64,000 nt of DNA from Octopus sinensis (Eukaryota), in the NCBI RefSeq assembly GCF_006345805.1, contig NC_043005.1, positions 2,294,001 to 2,358,000 on the forward strand, in the 5' to 3' direction. Below the pieces are notes generated by a model, which did not search any database, had not been told where the DNA came from, and saw only the letters and a list, made by a program, of their open reading frames with translations. The position numbers were made by a program, and so were the translations under genes. Numbering within the stretch: the stretch's first letter is position 1; every line of letters begins with the position of its first letter. Shown in pieces: positions 2,592 to 60,791 of this stretch.

Positions 2592-3193
<602 letters not shown>

Positions 3194-3459
3194 AAGCATT
3201 TCTGATTTGAGAAAAACAAAAAATGAGACAAACAATTGGGTTTCTGCTCTCTCGTGTGCTACCGCACATTAACAACCGTTATGTCTTTTCGCTACCACCT
3301 CTAATGAGAGCAGGTAAGTAAGAGTTAAGTGCCTAATGAGATTCATGTTTGGGTTGTTTCTTTGAGTTCTGATTGAACTGTTTCCTTTAATCTACTCCGA
3401 TACAAAAATGTAAGCACGAATTTCGTATAATATTTTTTAAAAAACAGACTAAAGGTGTG

Positions 3460-11239: not shown

Positions 11240-13231
<1,992 letters not shown>

Positions 13232-13675
13232 ATATATATCAGAGCATATGCATATTGTGTATGTGCTTGAATGCATATATATATAGGCATGTATATACAG
13301 ATAGGTATGTATATCTAACTATCTATCTACGTATCACTCTATCTCTCTCTCTTTCTATGTATATTGAAGTGGACGGACGTCTATTTGTTTCTCTCCCAAG
13401 TCAGTAGCAAGCTACACAGTTTCAAAACTAACTGACCTTAAATATATATATATTTGTAACCACGTGTTTGCCTACAAACCCGTAAGTACGTTTTCATTTA
13501 ACTACAAATTGTTATATACACCTGTTTTTCTTTTAATATCCTCAAACAACCAAATAATCAAAAACTCACACCCTTAAGAGAGAACATTTATATATATATA
13601 CACTTCTTTAACTCCCAAGAAAGAATATATATATTTTCAAAAATCAAAAGGAAAACAAACAAAAGAAAAACAAAC

Positions 13676-14908
13676 ATGACTAACTTGCAGGCCTGCAACA
13701 GACGAAATTGGTCTGATAACGAAATTGATGTTTTAATAAACACATGGTTCTCTCTTTCCCAAACAGAAAATCTAAATGTCTTGTGTTTGAATGAGATTGC
13801 CGAAAAAACATCACAAGTGGTCAACACACGATCCGTCAAACAGATTCGTAGCAAGCTGAAACATATCGAAGTATCTTTCAAACTGACAAAAGGCCATTTT
13901 GAAAAGCTTCTTCATATTTTCACAGTTCAAGAACAGCAACAGCTAGAAAATCAGCAGCCACAACAACAACAACAACAGAATGAGCCACTCCTGGTTCCCA
14001 GCACAATGGCTGACCCTAACATCGGTCAAGCACGACAACAACAACAACAGCCACAGCAACAAGAACAACAACAGCCACTCCTCAACTCTAGCTTACTAGA
14101 CGATTCACTAAATGCCAGTATCTTTTCACCGCTCTCACGGCAACCACCACAATTATCATCATCATCATCATCACCACCGCTGCCACCATCGTCTTCTATC
14201 ACCAAAAATACCAACAGAAAACCAAATAAGAAACCATTGCCCTCTTCCCCCACATCACCACCTCAATACTACTGCAGTAACAAAAACTTAAAGAAACATA
14301 GGAAGCAGAATGCGCCCCCCACGGCACAAACAAGAAATCCCCAAATATGCCGCTATTCACTGTGCCAGAGACTCTGCACAAATAGTGACTGCATCTTCAC
14401 GCATCTACCCGGCACTAGACGCACTACCGGCCAAGGCCAAAGCACGCATCCCACAATAACATCAACACCACCAAATAGTAAATCGAAATTCAAAACACAC
14501 ACAACTCGGAGTCCCAAAATCTGCCGGTATTCCCAACGTGAGAGAACATGTCTACTGAGTGACTGTCCCTTCACTCATCTTCCAGGGACCCGACGCACAA
14601 ACAGAAACGGGGCTTCAAGCCAACACACAAACCTGAATAACAATAAAAATAGAAACACACCATGCTGCAGTAATGCTGGTCTAGTCTTTTCAGGAAGACA
14701 CAAAAACAACAACAACAAAAGTGGAAACTACAACCCTATCCAACAGTGCAACCACACCTCCAGCCAAAAACTGCTCCCTAAGCAGGAAAATTCTTTTTTA
14801 GCCATGTTGAACATGGCAAAAGAGATACACAAAAACATTCTAGCCATCACTCAACACCATCCTATGCTATTACCCCAGTGCACCAATTCCCCACATTGCT
14901 GCCACTAA
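13676..14908 (+). CDS. LINE ORF1 protein: N-terminal Myb/SANT-like (trihelix-type) domain, Q/S/P-rich linker, two C-x8-C-x4-C-x3-H zinc fingers
   Basis: 410 aa open frame containing RNWSDNEIDVLINTW...IAEK...RSVKQIRSKLKHI, CRYSLCQRLCTNSDCIFTH and CRYSQRERTCLLSDCPFTH. Confidence 0.8.
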   Translation: MTNLQACNRRNWSDNEIDVLINTWFSLSQTENLNVLCLNEIAEKTSQVVNTRSVKQIRSKLKHIEVSFKLTKGHFEKLLHIFTVQEQQQLENQQPQQQQQQNEPLLVPSTMADPNIGQARQQQQQPQQQEQQQPLLNSSLLDDSLNASIFSPLSRQPPQLSSSSSSPPLPPSSSITKNTNRKPNKKPLPSSPTSPPQYYCSNKNLKKHRKQNAPPTAQTRNPQICRYSLCQRLCTNSDCIFTHLPGTRRTTGQGQSTHPTITSTPPNSKSKFKTHTTRSPKICRYSQRERTCLLSDCPFTHLPGTRRTNRNGASSQHTNLNNNKNRNTPCCSNAGLVFSGRHKNNNNKSGNYNPIQQCNHTSSQKLLPKQENSFLAMLNMAKEIHKNILAITQHHPMLLPQCTNSPHCCH

Positions 14909-17900
14909 CACACACAAAAAATCCAAGCCCCCTGCAACAGTCAAAACCAGCCACTACACTAACCTCCACATTCCTACTCAATGCACAAGGTGTCAGCCCT
15001 TCCATCAATGCACAAAAATGGAAGGTCCAATTCATTGAAGACTGGGTTGGTAACCATTCACACCACATCCCTTTCTTCATTCTCACTGAGACCCACCTTG
15101 ACAACTCCCACTTGGAAGCCGAAGTGAGAGTGAAGAATTTCACAACCATCCGCGCGGATCGTATCGGCAGGAGGAAGGGTGGAACTGCCATTTTCCTGCA
15201 TGATTCATTTACGGCAGATGGAAATAGTATATTCTCCAACGGCTACTGTGAATCAGTCACCGTGCACAACAAAGCCAATGACCTGACAGTAATTGGGCTC
15301 TATAGGCCGCCCCAAACACCCATACTGTGCTTTAAAGAATGCCTCAACAGCATTAAGTGCTTTATTCAACAGTGCCATTCTAGCAACCTACTCATGATGG
15401 GAGACTTCAATCTACCCTGTGTTGACTGGACTACAAACTGTTTGAAACCAAGCACTCCCGCTTCAACCGCTGACAAAGAAGCAGCAGAGTCACTTTTCGA
15501 CTTTACGAATGAGTTTTTCTTGTCCCAACTTGTCCTTGCACCAACAAGACATCAGAACATTTTGGACCTAGTGTTTAGTAACCACACTAACACTATACAT
15601 AACGTTACAGTGGAAAAAACCCTTCTTTCAGACCATGACATGGTTCTCTGTAACATGAAATTCCACCAGCCGAAAGCTAATCCTAGTGACCTTCCTCCAG
15701 CCCACCCATTTGACAACATGGATCTCCATAATGCCAACTGGGATGCAATCAGGAACGAGCTATCACATGTTGACTGGTCCTTTACACATACACACATCTC
15801 CACCAACCATAAAACATCTTGGCAGATCTTTGTAGACACCGTCACAGACATATGTGCAAAACACTCCCCACCAAGACCTGTGAACAAAAAGTGCAGAATC
15901 CCCCAAAACAAAAAAACCATTATCAGAAAAAATAAAAAGAACAAACAAAAAAATTAACAAACTAAAGTACTGCCAACAGCAACACACACATTCGACGGCT
16001 ATCGCACTGCTTGAATCTAAAAAATATAACCTCCAACAATGCATGAAGACCCTCATCAATAACCAAAGATCAGCTGAGGAGAAGTGGGCCATTGAAAAAA
16101 TCAAACTCAACCCCAAAGTGTTCTTTTCATTTGCGAGGAAACGCAGGGTCACTGTCTCCACTGTAGGCCCTCTAATTGACGAAACTGGCACTCTCCAAGA
16201 TAATGCCAAATCCATGGCCGAGATACTGCAGAAACAATACTGCTCTGTTTTCAGAAATCCTGATATGGCCGATCTGGGCTGATCAGTGATGTCAACCCCC
16301 AACACACTATATCGGACATAACGTTTAGTGCCCCTGATGTCTTAGCGGCGATAAACGAAATAAAACACAATTCAGCAGTAGGCCCCGATAGGTTCCCTGC
16401 TTGTGTCCTGAAGGTGTGTCGACACCAACTTGCATCTCCCCTTGCTAATCTGTGGAGAAACTCACTGGATGCTGGCTATATTCCAAAAAACCTTCTGTCC
16501 CAGTCTGTTGTCCCAGTTTTCAAAAAGGGAAACAAGTCCCTTGCAGTGAATTACCGTCCGATCTCACTCACCTCTCATATCATCAAGGTATTTGAGAGGG
16601 TGGTGAGATCTCGAATAACCCAATTTCTGGAAAGCAACAGACGGCTGATCTCCAACCAACATGGGTTCCGTAATGGAAGGGACTGCCTAACGCAGCTCCT
16701 GCATCACTTTGAGGACATTTTGAGAGCTTTGGGAGAGGGCTCCAACACCGATGTCATCTACCTTGATTTCAGTAAGGCCTTCGACAGGGTCGATCACAAG
16801 ATCCTATTGAAAAAACTATCCAACATTGGTGTCTCTGGAAAGTTACTGAAATGGATCAAGTGTTTCCTGACAGACAGATCTCAACATGTTGTAGTTGAAG
16901 GGGTAAAATCAAGCCCAGCCAAAGTCAGTAGTGGAGTTCCGCAAGGCACTGTGCTGGGCCCACTTCTTTTCATCATTTACATTAATGATATTAATGACAT
17001 CATCAAGCACAGCAACATAAAAATCTTTGCAGATGACTCCAAGCTACAGAAGGTCATAAATGAGGCGAGTGACCGGACATGCCTTCAGTCAGATCTACTG
17101 GCTGTTATCCAATGGGCAGAAAAAAACAATATGCTGCTGAACGAGGATAAATTTGAGCTAATCCACTTTGGAAAAGAGGATGCCCTGAAACTCCCATACT
17201 CCCTTCCTTCAGGTGAAACTCTCGCGGCGTCCAACAACATCAGAGACTTGGGAGTAATTGTGGACAACAACATAAGCTGGGCCACTCATATAAACACCAA
17301 AGTTGACATGGCCCGCAGAATGTGTTCCTGGATTCTCAGAACTTTCCAGTCGAGAGATATCCACACCATTATCCTTCTCTTCTCCACTTTTGCCAGACCC
17401 CACCTTGAATACTGTTGTCCACTGTGGTCTCCCCACACAATACAAGGTATCATAAAAGTTGAAGCACCTCAAAGGGCAATCACAAAAAAGATAGATGGCA
17501 TGACAGGCCTCGACTATTGGGGTCGACTAGAAAAGCTAAAACTCTATTCTCTCTAACGTCGTCGTGAGCGCTACATCATCTGCATGATGTGGAAAATATT
17601 CCATCAGCATTGCCCAAATGATGTTGGCATCACCTACAAGGTACATCCAAGGCTTGGGCCCCGTGCCATCCGCCCAAAACAAAAATCGCACTCTGATCTC
17701 ATAACAACAATACGGCACAATTATTTCACCTCAATTGGCTCCGCTCTCTTTAACATTACACCAAAACACATTAAAACAGAAACTGACCCTATAGGGTTCA
17801 AGAAGTCTTTGGACAGATTCCTTCAAGAAATCCCGGATAAACCCCCTACACCCGGATATGTCTCTGTAAACAATAACTCTCTACTTGAGTGGGCCATAGT

Positions 17901-17913
17901 GCCCAAATTCTGA
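14878..17913 (+). pseudogene. LINE ORF2: AP endonuclease plus reverse transcriptase, disrupted
   Basis: APE motifs LNAQG, LTETHL, YRPP, GDFNLP, LDLVF, SDHD. RT motifs YLDFSKAFDRVDH, GVPQGTVLGPLLF, FADD. +1 shift in A-run ~15930, -1 shift ~16277, in-frame TAA at 17554-17556 (LYSL*RRRERY). Confidence 0.95.
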
Positions 17914-18047
17914 CTTGAAAGACTTCACCAGGTGGTGCTATTAAGTTAGACATGGCCTGGGCCAATAATGGCCGAAACCTATCAAAGTATCAAAGTATAT
18001 CAAAGTATATATATATATATATAAATAGGTAGATAGAGATACATACA

Positions 18048-18106
<59 letters not shown>

Positions 18107-19390: not shown

Positions 19391-19394
19391 AGGT

Positions 19395-19933
19395 CACTCG
19401 CTTTCATACACACACTGACACACACGACATGCATACATGCAAGCATACATACATAAACACATATACATACACATATACATACATGCATACATGCATACAT
19501 ACATACATACATGCATACATGCATAAAGACATACATACATACATACATGCAAACATACATACATACATACATACATCATGCATGCATGCATACATACATA
19601 CATACATATATACATACATACATACATACATGTATGCATACATACATAAACACACATATACATACACATATACATACATGCATACATGCATACATACATA
19701 CATACATACATACATGCATACATACATACATACATACATACATGCATGCAAACATACATACATACATACATACATACATACATACATGCATGCCTACATA
19801 CATACATACATACATACATACATACATACATGCATACATACAAACATACATACATACATGCATACATACATACATACATACATAATACATGCATACATAC
19901 ATACATACATACATACATGCATACATACATACA

Positions 19934-19964
<31 letters not shown>

Positions 19965-20357
19965 CATACATACATACATACATGCATACATACATACATA
20001 CATACATACATACATACATACATACATACATACATACATACATACATACATACATACATACATGCATGCATGCATACATACATGCATGCATGCATGCATA
20101 CATACATACATACATACATACATACATACATGCATACATACATACATACATGCATACATACATACATACATACATACATACATACATACATACATACATA
20201 CATACATACATACATACATGCATACATACATACATACATGCATACATACATACATACATACATACATACATGCATGCATGCATACATACATACATACATA
20301 CATACATGCATACATACATACATGCATACATACATACATACATGCATACATACATAG
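19395..20357. repeat. ~960 bp (TACA)n/(TGCA) satellite tract
   Basis: Directly visible. Confidence 0.98.
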
Positions 20358-20559
20358 CTGTAGTTATAGAAGAAGCCGTAATTACAAACCCCATTTTTTT
20401 TTTTGGTGTTGTGAATTGAATACGGATCTATTTAACTGTAACGTAAAAGCGAAACAAAACCCAGCTGTGGGCTATATAATAATAATGAAATTATTGTGTA
20501 TCGTGTTCAGGTGCACTGCAACTCATCAACGTGTATGTACAGTACATAGAATTATGTGC

Positions 20560-22520
20560 AAAAGTCAGGAAAGTGAACAGTATATGAGTCACGATATACA
20601 TGTGTGCATAAGTATAGAGGTGGGGATATCAGGTATAGTGTTTACGAATTTCAGGAAGCTTGGAGATTTTAAAGGATGCAACATCTCGGCAACTAACAGC
20701 TGATGCAGGTAGTTTGTTCCGTGCAACTCTGAATGTGAAAAAATGATTCCAAAAGTCATGGGAGCTGTGCTGTTTTCTGACTTTGTGGGTATGGCCACGT
20801 GTATTAGACACATGGAGCTCAAAGGTGGTTGTTGGCATGGTGGTAAATAATTTTGTGGATTTAACAAGTCAGTTGCCAGACGTCGGAGCTTCAATGTATC
20901 TATGCCCAGGAAAGCAAGGCATTCGGGGTACGGTAGATGCCTGATGGAGCGTATTTGCTTGGTTGCACGTCTTTGAACAGTTTCCAGGAAGTCAATGTCC
21001 TGAGCAAGATAGGGGTTCCAGAGTGCTGATGCAAATTCCAAGTGTGGCCGCATCATAGCTATATACAGCCTTAAATAGATAGCTGAAAAGCGGCTGACAA
21101 AGGTCTCGCTGAGTGATGCCAAGACACCCTCGGCCTTCTTGACAGTTTTAGAGATGTGCTTTGTCCAGTGCAAATCACTGCTGATAGTAATGCCTGAGTC
21201 ACGATCACAAGAAGAATTCTTGGTATTAGTGTTGTGGAGAGCGTATGTGGACGCTGGGCTTTCCCTCTCAAAATACATGGTGGTACACTTGTCCACAGCC
21301 AGCTTCAGCTGCCAGTCTGTGGTCCATTGTTGCATTGTGTTCAGGTCTAATTGTAGGAAAGACCTATAGTGTTCAGGATCCGTCCTTTTTATCTCAAGGT
21401 ACAGCTTGATGTCATCTGCATATATTTCAGCACTGGCATTCTTTAAGTTGGTCTCTATGTCATAAATGTATGCAACAAACAAAAGGGAACCAAGAACAGA
21501 CCGCTGCGGTACACCAGATGACATCTAATAGGGTGAAGAATGCTGTCCTAGAACTGTGACTACCTCTTTTCTGCTGAGAATGAAGGACTCCAACCAGTTA
21601 AAGAGATCATCTTTCACACCCATTGTAGAAAGTTTTGCCATAAGCCTTTTGTGTGGTACAGAATTAAAAGCTTTAGCAAAGTCAAGGTAAACAACATCCA
21701 CCCATAAGACGCCTTAAGTGACCTACGCATCCTTTGGGATCGCCAGGGATCTGGCTTGTGTGGGGATTTCGAAGAGGACCAACTGGAGAGTGAGGTCTCT
21801 GCTTTGAACGTACATATTTCCAGAACAACTTACTGTCAGGGTTGGTTGCTATGTGCTGCTCAGATTCAAGCACTGCCCTTTTTGTCACCTGCTTGAGATG
21901 GTTGGATGATTTATTGCGCTCTTTCCTATTTATATCTGATTTATGCAGTTTGTATTCCTGTTCAACATTACAACGTTCTTTCCTGGCAAGTCGGACTGCA
22001 GAAGTCTCCCAAATCGCACTTTTGGGATGTTTTTTTGTGCTTACGTGGTACTAATGCTGCACATGCTGTCCATTTTGAGTTCAAGATGTTCTGAAGTATA
22101 GTGATCACATCTCCAGGGTCGTTTGGGTGTTGTAGCTCGGTGCAGTAAGAGTTCCAGTCTGCTTTATTTCAGTCAAAGCGAGCAGTTTGGAGATGGCTGT
22201 GGTTTTTGTTACTGTCGATAAGGGACAGATTGGCAATGACCCTAGCATGATCAGATTCGCCTAAAGGTTTCTCCTTTTCAGGAGTAGTGGTAAACAGTAG
22301 ATCCAAAGTTTTGTCACCTCTTGATGGGGAGTTGACTACTTGGAACTAGTTCAAGTCCAGCACCGATTCTATGAAATCATTTGCATTTTGCGGTCAACGA
22401 AAGGCTTCCCAATCAATATCAGGGTGACTGAAGTTACCTGTAATAAAAACATAAGTGGCTGTTTTCCTGGCGGCAGTTCTGAGGGTATCACAAAGTTGTG
22501 TGTCCTTATGTTAATTTGGA
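20560..22520 (-). pseudogene. Degenerate, internally deleted CR1-clade LINE (APE remnant plus RT and C-terminus)
   Basis: GVPQRSVLGSLLF, YADD, RPHLEFASALWNP, TRGH...FFTFRV...LP...FK C-terminus, YLDFAKAF at ~21690, APE remnants TLDLLF and ESDHA at 22250-22330. A deletion near 21710 joins the pre-RT region to the RT. Confidence 0.88.
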
Positions 22521-36884: not shown

Positions 36885-37270
36885 TATGGGAAAAAGTCAA
36901 GGTAGAAAATGCTAAAATAATTTTGTAAAAAAACATTTCAGTACCGGTTTCAGTCACTGAAACTTTTTCAACTGTAAGTAAGGAAAACTATTAAATTTTG
37001 GAAAAATTTATAGAAAAGTTGTTTTTTTTAAATATTTGTATAGTATTCAAATAGAAGGGGCATTTTCCTTGTTTCTGCTTGTCTCTGTCTCTCTTGTTTA
37101 CTCTTGTGGGTTCGAGGCCGTTGTGAATTCTTGGTAGGGAAGAAGAAGAAGAAGAAGAAGAAGAAGAAGAAGAAGAAGAAGAAGAAGAAGAAGAAGAAGA
37201 AGAAGAAGAAGAAGAAGAAGAAGAAGAAGAATGCGCGAGTGCCATGATAGTAGTATGTTAAATGGTCAAG
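36885..37270 (-). repeat. Interspersed repeat with (GAA)n and a U3-A8-type minimal hammerhead motif
   Basis: Direct homolog at 56990-57440. Reverse complement of 36939-36974 reads cag TTGAAAA agttt cag tgact GAAA ccgg TA ctg. Confidence 0.75.
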
Positions 37271-37394: not shown

Positions 37395-37489
37395 CGTATA
37401 ATGTATAAGGTATGTATAAAGCAGAGTTAGTGCAGAAACAATTGTAACTGATCATTTAAGATGTCTTCCTATTCGAATTATATATATAT

Positions 37490-37548
37490 TCAGGTGGTGG
37501 TATTACGTTAGACATGGCCTGGACCAATCTTTGGTCGAAACATATCTA

Positions 37549-37553
<5 letters not shown>
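37490..37553 (+). mobile_element. Extremely 5'-truncated (~64 bp) copy of the element-2 LINE 3' end
   Basis: caggtggtggtattacgttagacatggcctggaccaatctttggtcgaaacatatctaagttt matches the reverse complement of 49230-49293; flanked by (TA)n. Confidence 0.9.
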
Positions 37554-37614
<61 letters not shown>

Positions 37615-49030: not shown

Positions 49031-49158
<128 letters not shown>

Positions 49159-49319
49159 TATATATTATATGTGTGTGTATATATATTATATATACATAGA
49201 CATATAATATATATACATATAAACTTAGATAAACTTAGATATGTTTCGACCAAAGATTGGTCCAGTCCATGTCTAACTTAATAGCACCACCTGAAAGGAT
49301 TATTTGAATCCTGTTTAGG

Positions 49320-52293: not shown

Positions 52294-53497
52294 AAATGGT
52301 TGCTGATAGCTCGTTGGATCTCCTGGCTTAGGTCGGCCTTCATATTTTCTAGATAAGCCAGTAAAAAAGAGTTGCCTCTTTGGTTTGCCACTTGGTCAGA
52401 GGATACATAGTTCATGTTTATGTTATTTGGTGTTATGGTTTTTTCATGGTTCTGTCTTCGTTGTTTGATTGTAGGAGGTGAAATGTGGTTGTATTTTGTT
52501 TTTATTGTCGTAGAACTCCTCTGTTGCTGTTTATATTTATTTTGCAATCGTTTTGTGCCCTTCAGATAGTGGTGGTTGCATTCTGGGTTCAGGCATATCC
52601 TTAGTGACACAGAAGTTTGGCACAGTTTAGGATGGAAGAAGGTGCATTCATTGCCTTTTGTGCATCCATATTTGGGATCAGGACCATGGACTCTGTATTT
52701 AGGACAGTATTTGGGGTGGAGGTGAGGGCAGTTATTTCCCGTTATACCATATGGACAGGTGCCCTTAACAAGCCTACGACATAAGGTAGGATGGAAAAAA
52801 GCACAGCGTCCCGTGTTGCTGGTGCCGCTGGGGCCAAATCTACAGTTGCATTGAGAATGGTAACAACAGAGTATTTGACGTGGGTGTAGTAGAGGTTTTT
52901 TTATTCTGGTAGGCTCGTTGGTCAGTGGTCCTATTGTAGTAGCAGTAGCAGAGTGTTGTTGTTGTTGTTGCTGTAACAGCAGTGAAACTTGACTTGCAAC
53001 AGTAGGTCTGGGTGGAATCGGGTCAGATACTGGTGCCAAACAAGGTGATTCCAATGTAGTAGCAGAAGCAGACTGTTGAGTTTTGATAGTGAGTCCTGGC
53101 TTGCCAAGATAGTGTTGGGTGGAATTAGGTCATATAGCGATATCAATGAGGATGTTGTTTGTTGCTGGCTATCGGGTCGTTAAAGCGACCCCTGACCTGT
53201 TGGAGTTGGGTCATTTGGTGCACTACATTCATTGACAAGTATGGCTTTTAGTGTTGCCATGTGCGTGTGGAAAATAGGAAATGCTCTTACGATCTCTTTT
53301 ATTTTATTTTCGATCTGTTTTACAGATCTGTAAAAGGATTGTTTTGCTAACTTTTCAGCGATTTTACTGTAAACATTAGCTTTTACACAATCGTTATGGT
53401 GAGTGTAGCAAGCGTTTATCAGTGAACTGATTTCATTTTCAACCCAGTGGCGTTTTGGAATATTATTGGCCATATTCAGTGGGACAGTATTATACAC
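52203..53497 (-). pseudogene. LINE ORF1: Myb/SANT-like domain plus four CCCH-type fingers, split by one stop and one frameshift
   Basis: KRHWVENEISSLINACY...YSKIAEKLAKQSFYRSVKQIENKIKEI. Fingers end in CAFFH, CPHLH, CTFFH and CNHHY and are linked by HP(T/K)(L/Y)C. Confidence 0.82.
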
Positions 53498-53927
53498 TGT
53501 ATGTCAGTTATTGATGGCTTGGCGTATAATAGTGAATGCACCGTTGAAAAGTTTGTGTCGATATATTCGGAAATGCGTGGCTATATCTGGGTGTGTGTGG
53601 GAGAGTTCAGTGTATTTAGTACAAATCAGGATGAGCGGTGTGTTTAATACAAATCAAGAGAAAAGAATTGTACTCACGGGACTAGTTTTAGAACTAGTCT
53701 TGGGTTTAGTTTTAGTTTATATTTCTTTCTCCCAAGGTTGTATATAAATTTGTATAAATTTATCCTCCGATGGTAGTAAAATAGTAGAATAGTAGAATTC
53801 AAAAGTTCTGTGACTAAAAACAAGAAAGAAGTTTCGCTGGCTTGAGTTGAAATATGCTTCTTTGGCTACTGACTTGACCGGAGCTATGAAAAAGTACGTC
53901 TTGTCACGACGAATGCTCACGATTATA

Positions 53928-53965
<38 letters not shown>

Positions 53966-53970
<5 letters not shown>

Positions 53971-59985: not shown

Positions 59986-60700
59986 GGATGTTGTTTTTAA
60001 TTTCTTTCGGGATAACATTGAAAAGAGCAGGACATTGTGTGGCAATGTTTATTATGTGATGTGATCTCGACCTTTGTAGGGAACGTAATTCACGAGGGCC
60101 TAGTCTTGGGCGAATTGTAAGCATAATACCGATATCATTTGGATAATATTTATTTCTTTGTTGCCCACAGGGAGCTAAACATAGAAGGGACAAACAAGGA
60201 CAGACAAATGGATTAAGTCGATTAGATCGACCTCAGTGCGTAACTGGTACTTATTTAATCGAATCCGAAAGGATGAAAGGCAAAGTCGACCTCGACGAAA
60301 TTTGAACTCAGAACATTTCACCCGGCGTGCTAATGTTTCTGCCAGCTCGCCGCCTTTTATCATTTGGATAATATTGATGAAATATTTTCCACGTTGTGCA
60401 AATAATGTATCGCTCATGGTGGCGTTGCAGAGGATGGAGTTTCAGCAGTTTAAGTCGAGCCCAACAATCAAGTCCTATCATGCCATTTAGTTTTTTAGTG
60501 ATTGATCTTTGTGCCGCTTCGATCCTCATTATGTCTTGTTTTTTGTAGGGGGACCGCAATGGGCAGCAGTATTCGAGGTGGGGGCCTAGCGAATGTGGAG
60601 AAGAGAAGGATGATGGTTTCCTGATCCCTAGATGGAAAAGTTCTGAGGATCTGTGAACACATTCTGCGGGTGATATCGACTATGGTTACTGTCAACATTT
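59986..60700 (-). pseudogene. CR1/L2-group LINE RT C-terminal fragment related to elements 1 and 2, split by a SINE
   Basis: RRMCSQILRTF, FSTFARP, ERYIICTTWKIF, PRLGPR, PALFNVIPKEIK. Confidence 0.85.
60151..60357 (-). mobile_element. SINE family 2 with an 18-bp target-site duplication
   Basis: tatcatttggataatatt occurs at 60133-60150 and at 60358-60375. Confidence 0.92.
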
Positions 60701-60791
60701 ACACCTAAGTTTCTGATATTATCTGACGTTTCAAATAGGTCTCCCGACGGTAGTGTATACGGTTGTTTGAGTGCGCCCTCTTTTACAAAGA

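Follow-up and report, generated by a model that had tools for sequence, protein, structure and literature searches.

What kind of protein is encoded by open reading frame 1 (ORF1) of a long interspersed nuclear element (LINE) in this stretch of the Octopus sinensis genome, and how did it come by the domain at its N-terminus? The stretch, referred to below as the window, comprises 64,000 nucleotides of contig NC_043005.1 (positions 2,294,001 to 2,358,000 of the forward strand, RefSeq assembly GCF_006345805.1), and coordinates are counted from its first letter unless another locus is named. In two diverged LINEs of the window, element 1 on the + strand and element 2 on the - strand, ORF1 appears to begin with a Myb/SANT-like domain and to continue through a linker into CCCH zinc fingers. 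We conclude, with a probability of about 0.72, that these elements represent a sublineage of CR1-like (Jockey-superfamily) LINEs, specific to octopods, whose ORF1 has a Myb/SANT-like module in place of its PHD domain. Element 1, whose ORF1 had been described as intact at 410 amino acids (aa) and is so, is organized as follows.

13397-13675, + strand: 5' untranslated region (UTR), opening with the shared 5' terminus CAAGTCAGTAGC
13676-14908, + strand: intact ORF1 of 410 aa, uninterrupted
13700-13897, + strand: Myb/SANT-like (trihelix, PF13837) domain, ORF1 aa 9-74; Pfam score 29.4 bits
13928-14320, + strand: low-complexity linker rich in Q, S, and P; predicted local distance difference test (pLDDT) score below 50; unalignable between copies
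14348-14404, + strand: CCCH finger A, C225-x8-C234-x4-C239-x3-H243, then LPGTRR; located with the family core profile
14522-14578, + strand: CCCH finger B, C283-x8-C292-x4-C297-x3-H301, then LPGTRR; located with the family core profile
14792-14857, + strand: C-terminal helix, aa 373-394, NSFLAMLNMAKEIHKNILAI; helix in the AlphaFold2 (AF2) model
14878-17913, + strand: ORF2, with apurinic/apyrimidinic endonuclease (APE) and reverse transcriptase (RT) by Pfam; reads in the -1 frame and overlaps the ORF1 end
17914-18005, + strand: 3' UTR, including a conserved hairpin region; (TATCAAAG)3 tail

The ORF1 of element 2 was found where it had been placed, at 53497-52203 on the - strand, in two pieces split by one stop codon and a frameshift within the linker. 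A third copy of the family is severely truncated at its 5' end.

53474-53876, - strand: element 2, 5' UTR
53180-53497, - strand: element 2, N-terminal piece of ORF1 with the Myb/SANT-like domain, probable ATG at 53473; Pfam score 34.5-35.3 bits
52203-53054, - strand: element 2, C-terminal piece of ORF1 with linker, partial finger, three-finger CCCH core, and C-terminal helix
49320-52293, - strand: element 2, ORF2 (APE and RT) in several fragments
49221-49319, - strand: element 2, 3' UTR and (ATCTAAGTTT)2 tail
37490-37551, + strand: third family copy, last ~62 bp (3' UTR and tail), inside (TA)n; recognized by the 3' UTR motif

A domain of ~65 aa opens ORF1 in both elements. The two N-termini are 33% identical over 75 aa (BLASTP E=1e-9), and both carry the motif to which the initial annotation had drawn attention, W-x3-E-I-x2-LIN ... 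IAEK ... RSVKQI-x2-K. The same annotation had proposed a trihelix or Myb/SANT-like domain, and the Pfam comparison bears this out: PF13837 (Myb_DNA-bind_4, curated gathering cut-off 27 bits) is the top Pfam match for the N-termini of element 1, of element 2, and of a related LINE from the octopod Argonauta hians. The domain-alone scores of both window elements exceed the cut-off, at 29.4 bits for element 1 (E=1.1e-6) and 35.3 bits for element 2 (E=1.6e-8); the N-terminal ORF piece of element 2 scores 34.5 bits (E=2.7e-8), and the whole ORF of element 1 scores 25.5 bits (E=1.8e-5), just below the cut-off. The consensus of a three-sequence profile scores 29.1 bits. The match spans helices 1-3, from profile position 1 to 72 of 89. 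In the three-way alignment of element 1, element 2, and the Argonauta sequence, 18 positions are invariant and are spread across all predicted helices (among them W12, E16-I17, I21-N22, I41, R52-S53, Q56-I57, K60, I64, and F68 in element 1 numbering), whereas the linker that follows the domain is wholly unalignable among the three copies, a pattern that points to selection on a folded domain. The domain is basic, with an isoelectric point (pI) of 9.4-10.4 (9.4 in element 1), and the first ~200 aa of ORF1 contain no Cys-rich module in any of the three. The Myb/SANT assignment thus has solid profile-sequence support from two independent sequences.

Downstream of this domain, the low-complexity linker and CCCH fingers reported for both elements are present, and the fingers connect the two proteins to a large family. 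Element 1 has two C-x8-C-x4-C-x3-H units, and element 2 has a complete three-finger CCCH core together with part of a further finger. When a profile built from the window ORF1 pieces was run exhaustively with hmmsearch against 1.84 billion cluster representatives (50% identity clusters), it matched 1607 of them at E<=1e-3 and 644 at E<=1e-10; each of the 150 matches listed covers the CCCH/C-terminal part only. The common core consists of three tandem CCCH fingers ending HLKGTxR, then a linker, then a helix with an FL motif, whose column (F363) is conserved in at least 90% of the 88 full-length-like family members, defined as those of at least 350 aa. Element 2 matches the core profile end to end (~112-113 bits). 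Element 1 (41 bits) and Argonauta (34 bits) each match it twice, both times in finger 3 only; in element 1, finger A scores 25.5 bits over profile positions 50-82 and finger B 26.3 bits over positions 52-82. Judged by these profile matches, element 1 carries family finger 3 in duplicate, as its fingers A and B.

The claim that the fingers are of the CCCH type holds for the family and for the spacing, since C-x7-8-C-x4-5-C-x3-H is kept in both fingers of element 1 and 12 of 20 family cores match Pfam zf-CCCH (best E=4.5e-6); it holds less well for element 1 itself, whose Pfam CCCH match is weak (zf-CCCH_2, E=1.1). In a profile search of the PDB, the solved proteins closest to the core are MBNL1 (E=0.011) and CPSF30, in their RNA-binding tandem fingers. 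The C-terminal helix also occurs in element 2, in Argonauta, and in the ORF1s of two metagenome loci (L005 and L007), and by analogy it is possibly a multimerization helix. An ORF1 family of at least 644 clusters (E<=1e-10), built on three MBNL/CPSF30-like CCCH fingers, is thereby brought to light, and no description of its CCCH core was found in the open ORF1 literature searched. Separately, 2A-like GxExNPGP motifs lie near the N-terminus in 9 of the 150 listed family matches, and such motifs have been published for CR1-type elements (PMC3708506).

Most relatives carry a different domain at the position of the Myb-like one. Among the 88 full-length-like members, eight C4HC3 PHD columns are conserved in at least 90%, and Pfam recognizes PHD in 19 and PHD_4 in 8; Myb/SANT is not among the 25 most-matched Pfam families listed for these members, and a local hidden Markov model of the Myb domain matched none of the 150 listed family matches. 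The metagenome contigs L005 (L005:1-1317; RT 56% identical) and L007 (L007:165-1574; 50%), with complete or nearly complete ORF1s, likewise show a PHD-like Cys-rich N-terminus followed by the CCCH core and helix; the family proteins are numbered P0124-P0270. Because the C4HC3 signature is so widespread among the 88 members and because L005 and L007 have PHD-type N-termini, we take the usual family layout to be PHD, linker, three CCCH fingers, and helix, corresponding to the type III ORF1 of CR1/L2 elements. As the CCCH core and helix are family-wide and a PHD stands at the N-terminus in most relatives, the two window elements are most simply read as products of a PHD-to-Myb replacement.

The best RT relative of the window elements is the Argonauta hians protein (61% identity). 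Its locus (L001) contains an intact ORF1 of 407 aa and an ORF2 reading frame of 933 aa, and the ORF1 follows the same design, its Myb-like N-terminus leading through a linker rich in T, P, and N to two finger-3 units with GT[KR]R after them and then to the C-terminal helix. At this locus the 3' UTR is likewise that of the window elements, and the tail is (TATCTAAG)3. The architecture seen in two diverged window elements therefore recurs in a third element. In a neighbor-joining tree of RTs (no bootstrap), the placement that had been called for, elements 1 and 2 and the Argonauta element form one clade and the PHD-type elements fall outside it. Because an intact ORF1 of the same design exists in Argonauta and the three fall in one RT clade, the sequences identify the Myb version as a real, heritable architecture. 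Other relatives cover less of ORF1: P0121 and P0122 are element 2-like C-terminal pieces on contigs that end before the N-terminus, L002 and L004 are 5'-truncated, L003 has no visible ORF1, and L006 has a partial P/Q-rich ORF1 end.

That both window copies are LINEs throughout their length follows from features at both ends and in ORF2. Their common 5' terminus, CAAGTCAGTAGC, lies at 13397 and 53876, and the motif AAGTCAGTAGC occurs in the window only at 13398 (+) and 53875 (-). Both ORF2s encode APE (PF14529/PF03372) and RT (PF00078) by Pfam, and their RTs are ~59-73% identical. The 3' UTR, CAGGTGGTGCTATTARGTTAG..., is kept in element 1 (17929-18005, +), element 2 (49293-49221, -), and Argonauta (L001 8236-8312), with a compensatory double change in the stem, GGCC/GGCC in element 1 and Argonauta and GACC/GGTC in element 2. 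All three end in tandem-repeat tails with units of 8-10 nt, (TATCAAAG)3 in element 1, (ATCTAAGTTT)2 in element 2, and (TATCTAAG)3 in Argonauta. The third window copy (37490-37551) is of the element 2 type and retains the conserved 3' UTR and ATCTAAGTTT tail. By analogy with CR1 elements, the conserved 3' UTR with its hairpin is likely an RT recognition site. The earlier descriptions of two diverged full-length elements and of a CR1/L2-like type both agree with these data, and elements 1 and 2, though decayed, are full-length and belong to a CR1-like group of LINEs; the CR1-like label rests on APE and RT, the 3' hairpin, and the short tandem tail, the tree having covered the RTs of the retrieved relatives. 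In element 1, the sole intact reading frame is ORF1, and ORF2 is disrupted by numerous stops at ~15958-16290 and a single stop at 17557.

How might such a protein have arisen and worked? The ancestral ORF1 protein (ORF1p) would have consisted of an N-terminal PHD, a disordered linker, three CCCH fingers ending LKGTxR, and a C-terminal amphipathic helix. The simplest history would be that a basic Myb/SANT-like trihelix took over from the PHD once in the octopod CR1-like lineage and that the fingers of the element 1/Argonauta branch were later remodeled to two finger-3 copies, with element 2 retaining the full core. From what is known of the domain family, the CCCH fingers would bind single-stranded RNA, namely the LINE transcript. 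The C-terminal helix may multimerize ORF1p; in other ORF1ps, coiled coils do so (PMC3905857). The N-terminal module may tether the ribonucleoprotein (RNP) to chromatin or DNA at the site of integration or close to it, a PHD through histone tails and a Myb-like domain through direct DNA contact or, if SANT-like, through histones. By analogy, tethering to chromatin or DNA is the likely role of the Myb-like domain, and its basic pI would favor nucleic-acid binding over histone binding of the SANT type. A Myb/SANT-like domain of the DNA-binding type would add a further module to those catalogued for ORF1. Its presence at the position of a histone reader supports the idea that the N-terminal ORF1 module is a chromatin or DNA tether, for which the PHD and Myb versions provide a natural pair for testing.

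The observations that weigh against the replacement reading concern the spread of the domain, its insertion sites, and its structure, and we give the last two with the alternatives that they favor. The architecture is supported by just three copies. For Argonauta, the whole ORF has no PF13837 match at E<=1, and the domain alone, with PF13837 as its sole hit, reaches 13.2 bits (E=0.12), under the Pfam cut-off. Relatives of the Myb domain were not found elsewhere: a word-indexed search with the three-sequence alignment gave no match at E<=10, a scan of Joint Genome Institute (JGI) metagenome DNA with the Myb alignment gave 189 pattern matches of which 0 were confirmed, and no Myb-domain relative was among the 150 listed matches of the exhaustive profile search. 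The whole ORF1 also had no match in a word-indexed protein search. Finally, neither window copy is fully intact.

The insertion sites bear on whether the module could do more than tether the RNP. Each copy is flanked by TA-rich sequence.

13058-13238 and 18006-18103: (TA)n-rich flanks of element 1
49033-49154 and 53935-53966: (TA)n-rich flanks of element 2
37479-37489 and 37553-37610: (TA)n-rich flanks of the third copy
about 2664-3252 and 8313-8997 of L001: TA-rich flanks of the Argonauta copy

All three window copies of the Myb-type family thus lie in (TA)n-rich sequence on both sides, and the Argonauta copy likewise has TA-rich flanks. A position picked at random in the window has a (TA)>=4 run no more than 170 nt away on each side in about 13% of cases, and by that measure three of three would have a probability of ~0.002, with a threshold set post hoc. 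In four relatives with PHD-type or unknown ORF1s, the tandem tail is followed by unique 3' sequence other than (TA)n. We regard a (TA)n insertion preference of the Myb-type family as suggestive, and the location as consistent with a DNA-directed preference, short of proof. The stronger proposal, that the Myb-like domain of ORF1p is a sequence-directed DNA-binding module that was gained by the PHD swap and steers the LINE into (TA)n, seems doubtful to us. If it were true, this would be, to our knowledge, the first APE-type LINE with insertion-site choice set by a DNA-binding domain of ORF1p and not by the ORF2p endonuclease. More generally, a (TA)n association that is real and Myb-dependent would show that ORF1p can have a part in the target choice of LINEs, which would bear on the way in which LINEs, together with microsatellites, shape the very repeat-rich genomes of cephalopods.

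The (TA)n association is weak evidence, with n=3-4 and a distance threshold chosen after looking, and unrelated LINE fragments in the window also adjoin microsatellites. We therefore rejected the flanks as proof of Myb-directed targeting. An endonuclease preference or tail microhomology could explain the location, and this leads to the alternative that survives best, possible in our view with the odds clearly against it: the Myb/SANT-like domain would bind protein, such as histones, or the element's own RNA or cDNA, with no choice of target DNA, and the (TA)n context would come from the endonuclease together with microhomology of the tail. The domain occupies the position of the PHD, a histone reader, in the relatives, and the element tails end ...AGTATA, merge into (TA)n, and could prime on TA repeats by microhomology; the fragments that end beside microsatellites fit this account too. 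It is less easily squared with the basic pI of the domain (9.4-10.4), histone-binding SANT domains being typically acidic, or with the relatives that have similar tandem tails and PHD-type or unknown ORF1s but lie outside (TA)n.

Quite unlikely, in our estimation, is that the N-terminal region is a helical coiled-coil multimerization module and the Pfam match a borderline false positive. This is the point at which the structure predictions matter. The AF2 model of the whole ORF1 of element 1, from a single sequence, is poor (pLDDT 41), with helices at 14-25, 31-45, 52-91, and 373-394; the model of the element 2 domain, from a two-sequence alignment, reaches pLDDT 71 and a predicted template modeling score of 0.56, with helices at 7-24, 28-45, 51-64, and 66-84. 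Long helices such as 52-91 in element 1, and the four helices of 14-19 residues in element 2, would suit a coiled coil. A Foldseek search of the PDB with the element 2 model gave no significant Myb match (best E=1.8). PDB sequence searches with the domain yielded only weak matches on helices 3-4 (E=0.003-0.015), all to isoleucine-zipper chimeras of the GCN4-pII type on KQIENKIKEI... (profile E=0.003, element 2 E=0.015), and the 25.5 bits of the whole element 1 ORF fall just short of 27.

Several features are difficult to reconcile with a coiled coil. Scanned separately, two sequences that are only 33% identical both clear the Pfam gathering score (E=1e-6 to 1e-8), the match covers helices 1-3 and not the last helix alone, and a third sequence, from Argonauta, has PF13837 as its sole hit. 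No variation occurs at the hallmark positions, namely the W of helix 1, E-I-x3-I-N, the I of helix 2, and the helix 3 motif R-S-x2-Q-I-x2-K; the heptad-like stretch runs for only ~2-3 heptads before a Pro or Gly, and element 1 has no coiled-coil matches in the PDB. As to the three-helix fold for which the initial annotation had called, the AF2 helices coincide with the positions expected from the Pfam match, but the input was shallow (one or two sequences) and Foldseek gave no significant match. A three-helix fold of the N-terminal domain is thus predicted with no more than modest confidence.

That the Myb-encoding 5' part is adjacent host-gene or DNA-transposon sequence (e.g., a Harbinger accessory gene) and no part of the LINE is very improbable, and accidental juxtaposition with a host exon was rejected: the searches run and the 150 listed matches gave no relatives of the Myb domain in LINE ORF1s elsewhere, as this account would predict, but the domain stands in the same place in three independent insertions with the same layout in two genera, element 1 and Argonauta carry Myb and CCCH in one continuous ORF, the Myb part lies downstream of the common LINE 5' terminus in both window elements, and the RT phylogeny groups exactly these three elements.

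With the replacement reading preferred, the elements can be set against known systems. LINE ORF1 proteins are modular, and the PHD-type (type III) ORF1 of CR1/L2 elements was reportedly described by Kapitonov and Jurka in 2003 and by Khazina and Weichenrieder in 2009. A survey of Jockey-superfamily ORF1s lists CCHC, RRM, PHD, esterase, coiled coil/CTD, and zinc finger/leucine zipper modules (Metcalfe & Casane 2014, PMC4120745), including the PHD-containing type III ORF1 of CR1/L2 elements. The window elements resemble type III CR1/L2 elements in their APE and RT ORF2, 3' hairpin, short tandem tail, and ORF1 position, and the PHD-type relatives that we retrieved have both the CCCH core and the C-terminal helix in common with the window ORF1s. 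They differ in the Myb/SANT-like domain that the window ORF1s carry instead of a PHD and, for element 1 and Argonauta, in a core cut down from three fingers to two copies of finger 3. Myb, SANT, and CCCH are not mentioned in the text of the Jockey-superfamily survey (PMC4120745), nor in a study of vertebrate CR1 from 2026. Full-text searching of the open literature turned up no description of a Myb-like or CCCH domain in a LINE ORF1; an entry in Repbase or Dfam is still possible. The element type and the principle of ORF1 modularity are therefore known, and what is new, within the open literature, is a domain not previously listed for ORF1. The suggestion of an unusual, possibly undescribed architecture consequently survives with a change of emphasis: CCCH fingers plus helix are the core of a large PHD family, and sequence comparison identifies the PHD-to-Myb replacement as the unusual feature and not fingers newly paired with a domain from scratch.

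Among LINEs of the restriction-like endonuclease type, R2 has Myb and zinc fingers in its single ORF that recognize the 28S target (PMC11204384). The likeness lies in a LINE-encoded Myb-type domain beside zinc fingers, which in R2 recognizes target DNA and positions the RNP. In R2, however, the domain is fused to the RT protein in a single ORF, the endonuclease is restriction-like, and the C2H2 finger(s) precede a c-Myb-type domain, whereas here a separate ORF1p has a PF13837 trihelix-type domain with CCCH fingers downstream of it, and the endonuclease is APE. No sequence relationship between the window Myb-like domain and the R2 Myb was detected, and the comparison is one of functional analogy, not membership. 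PIF/Harbinger DNA transposons encode a trihelix/Myb-SANT-like accessory protein, separate from the catalytic protein, that is thought to bring the machinery to DNA. This, too, is a transposon-encoded protein of the trihelix/Myb-SANT-like kind, with the likeness at the level of the Pfam clan, but it belongs to a DNA transposon with no CCCH fingers and no RNA intermediate. Several LINEs of the R4 and R1 clades target microsatellites, namely Dong (TAA)n, Waldo (ACAY)n, Mino (AC)n, Kibi (TC)n, and Koshi (TTC)n. Like these, the present copies, very few in number, lie inside a simple-sequence repeat, here (TA)n; the microsatellite-targeting LINEs come from other clades, and the endonuclease or ORF2 is credited with their specificity.

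Further observations concern the junction of the two reading frames and the surroundings of the elements. The 3' end of ORF1 at 14878-14908 encodes a conserved ...CCH terminus (PHCCH in element 1, QCCH in P0121 and P0122; also the end of P0123), which is exactly where ORF2 overlaps in the -1 frame, and ORF2 has no ATG close to its start. These features hint at a constrained ORF1/ORF2 overlap that may serve frameshifting or reinitiation.

The window is AT-rich (37% GC) and rich in microsatellites. It contains three further fragments of related LINE ORF2s, at 11432-12764 (+), 20880-21698 (-), and 59996-60789 (-), with 28-65% protein identity to element 1. The first ends near the (TA)n at 13058, and the second ends next to a tandem array of ~1.3 kb at 19394-20703, whose (ATGTATGTATGC)-like units read as long spurious ORFs in every frame (MYVCMYVC..., HTYIHTYI...). 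At 37146-37232, ~260 bp upstream of the truncated LINE copy, there is a long (GAA)n microsatellite beside (TG)n and (TA)n tracts, and simple repeats are densely clustered in this region.

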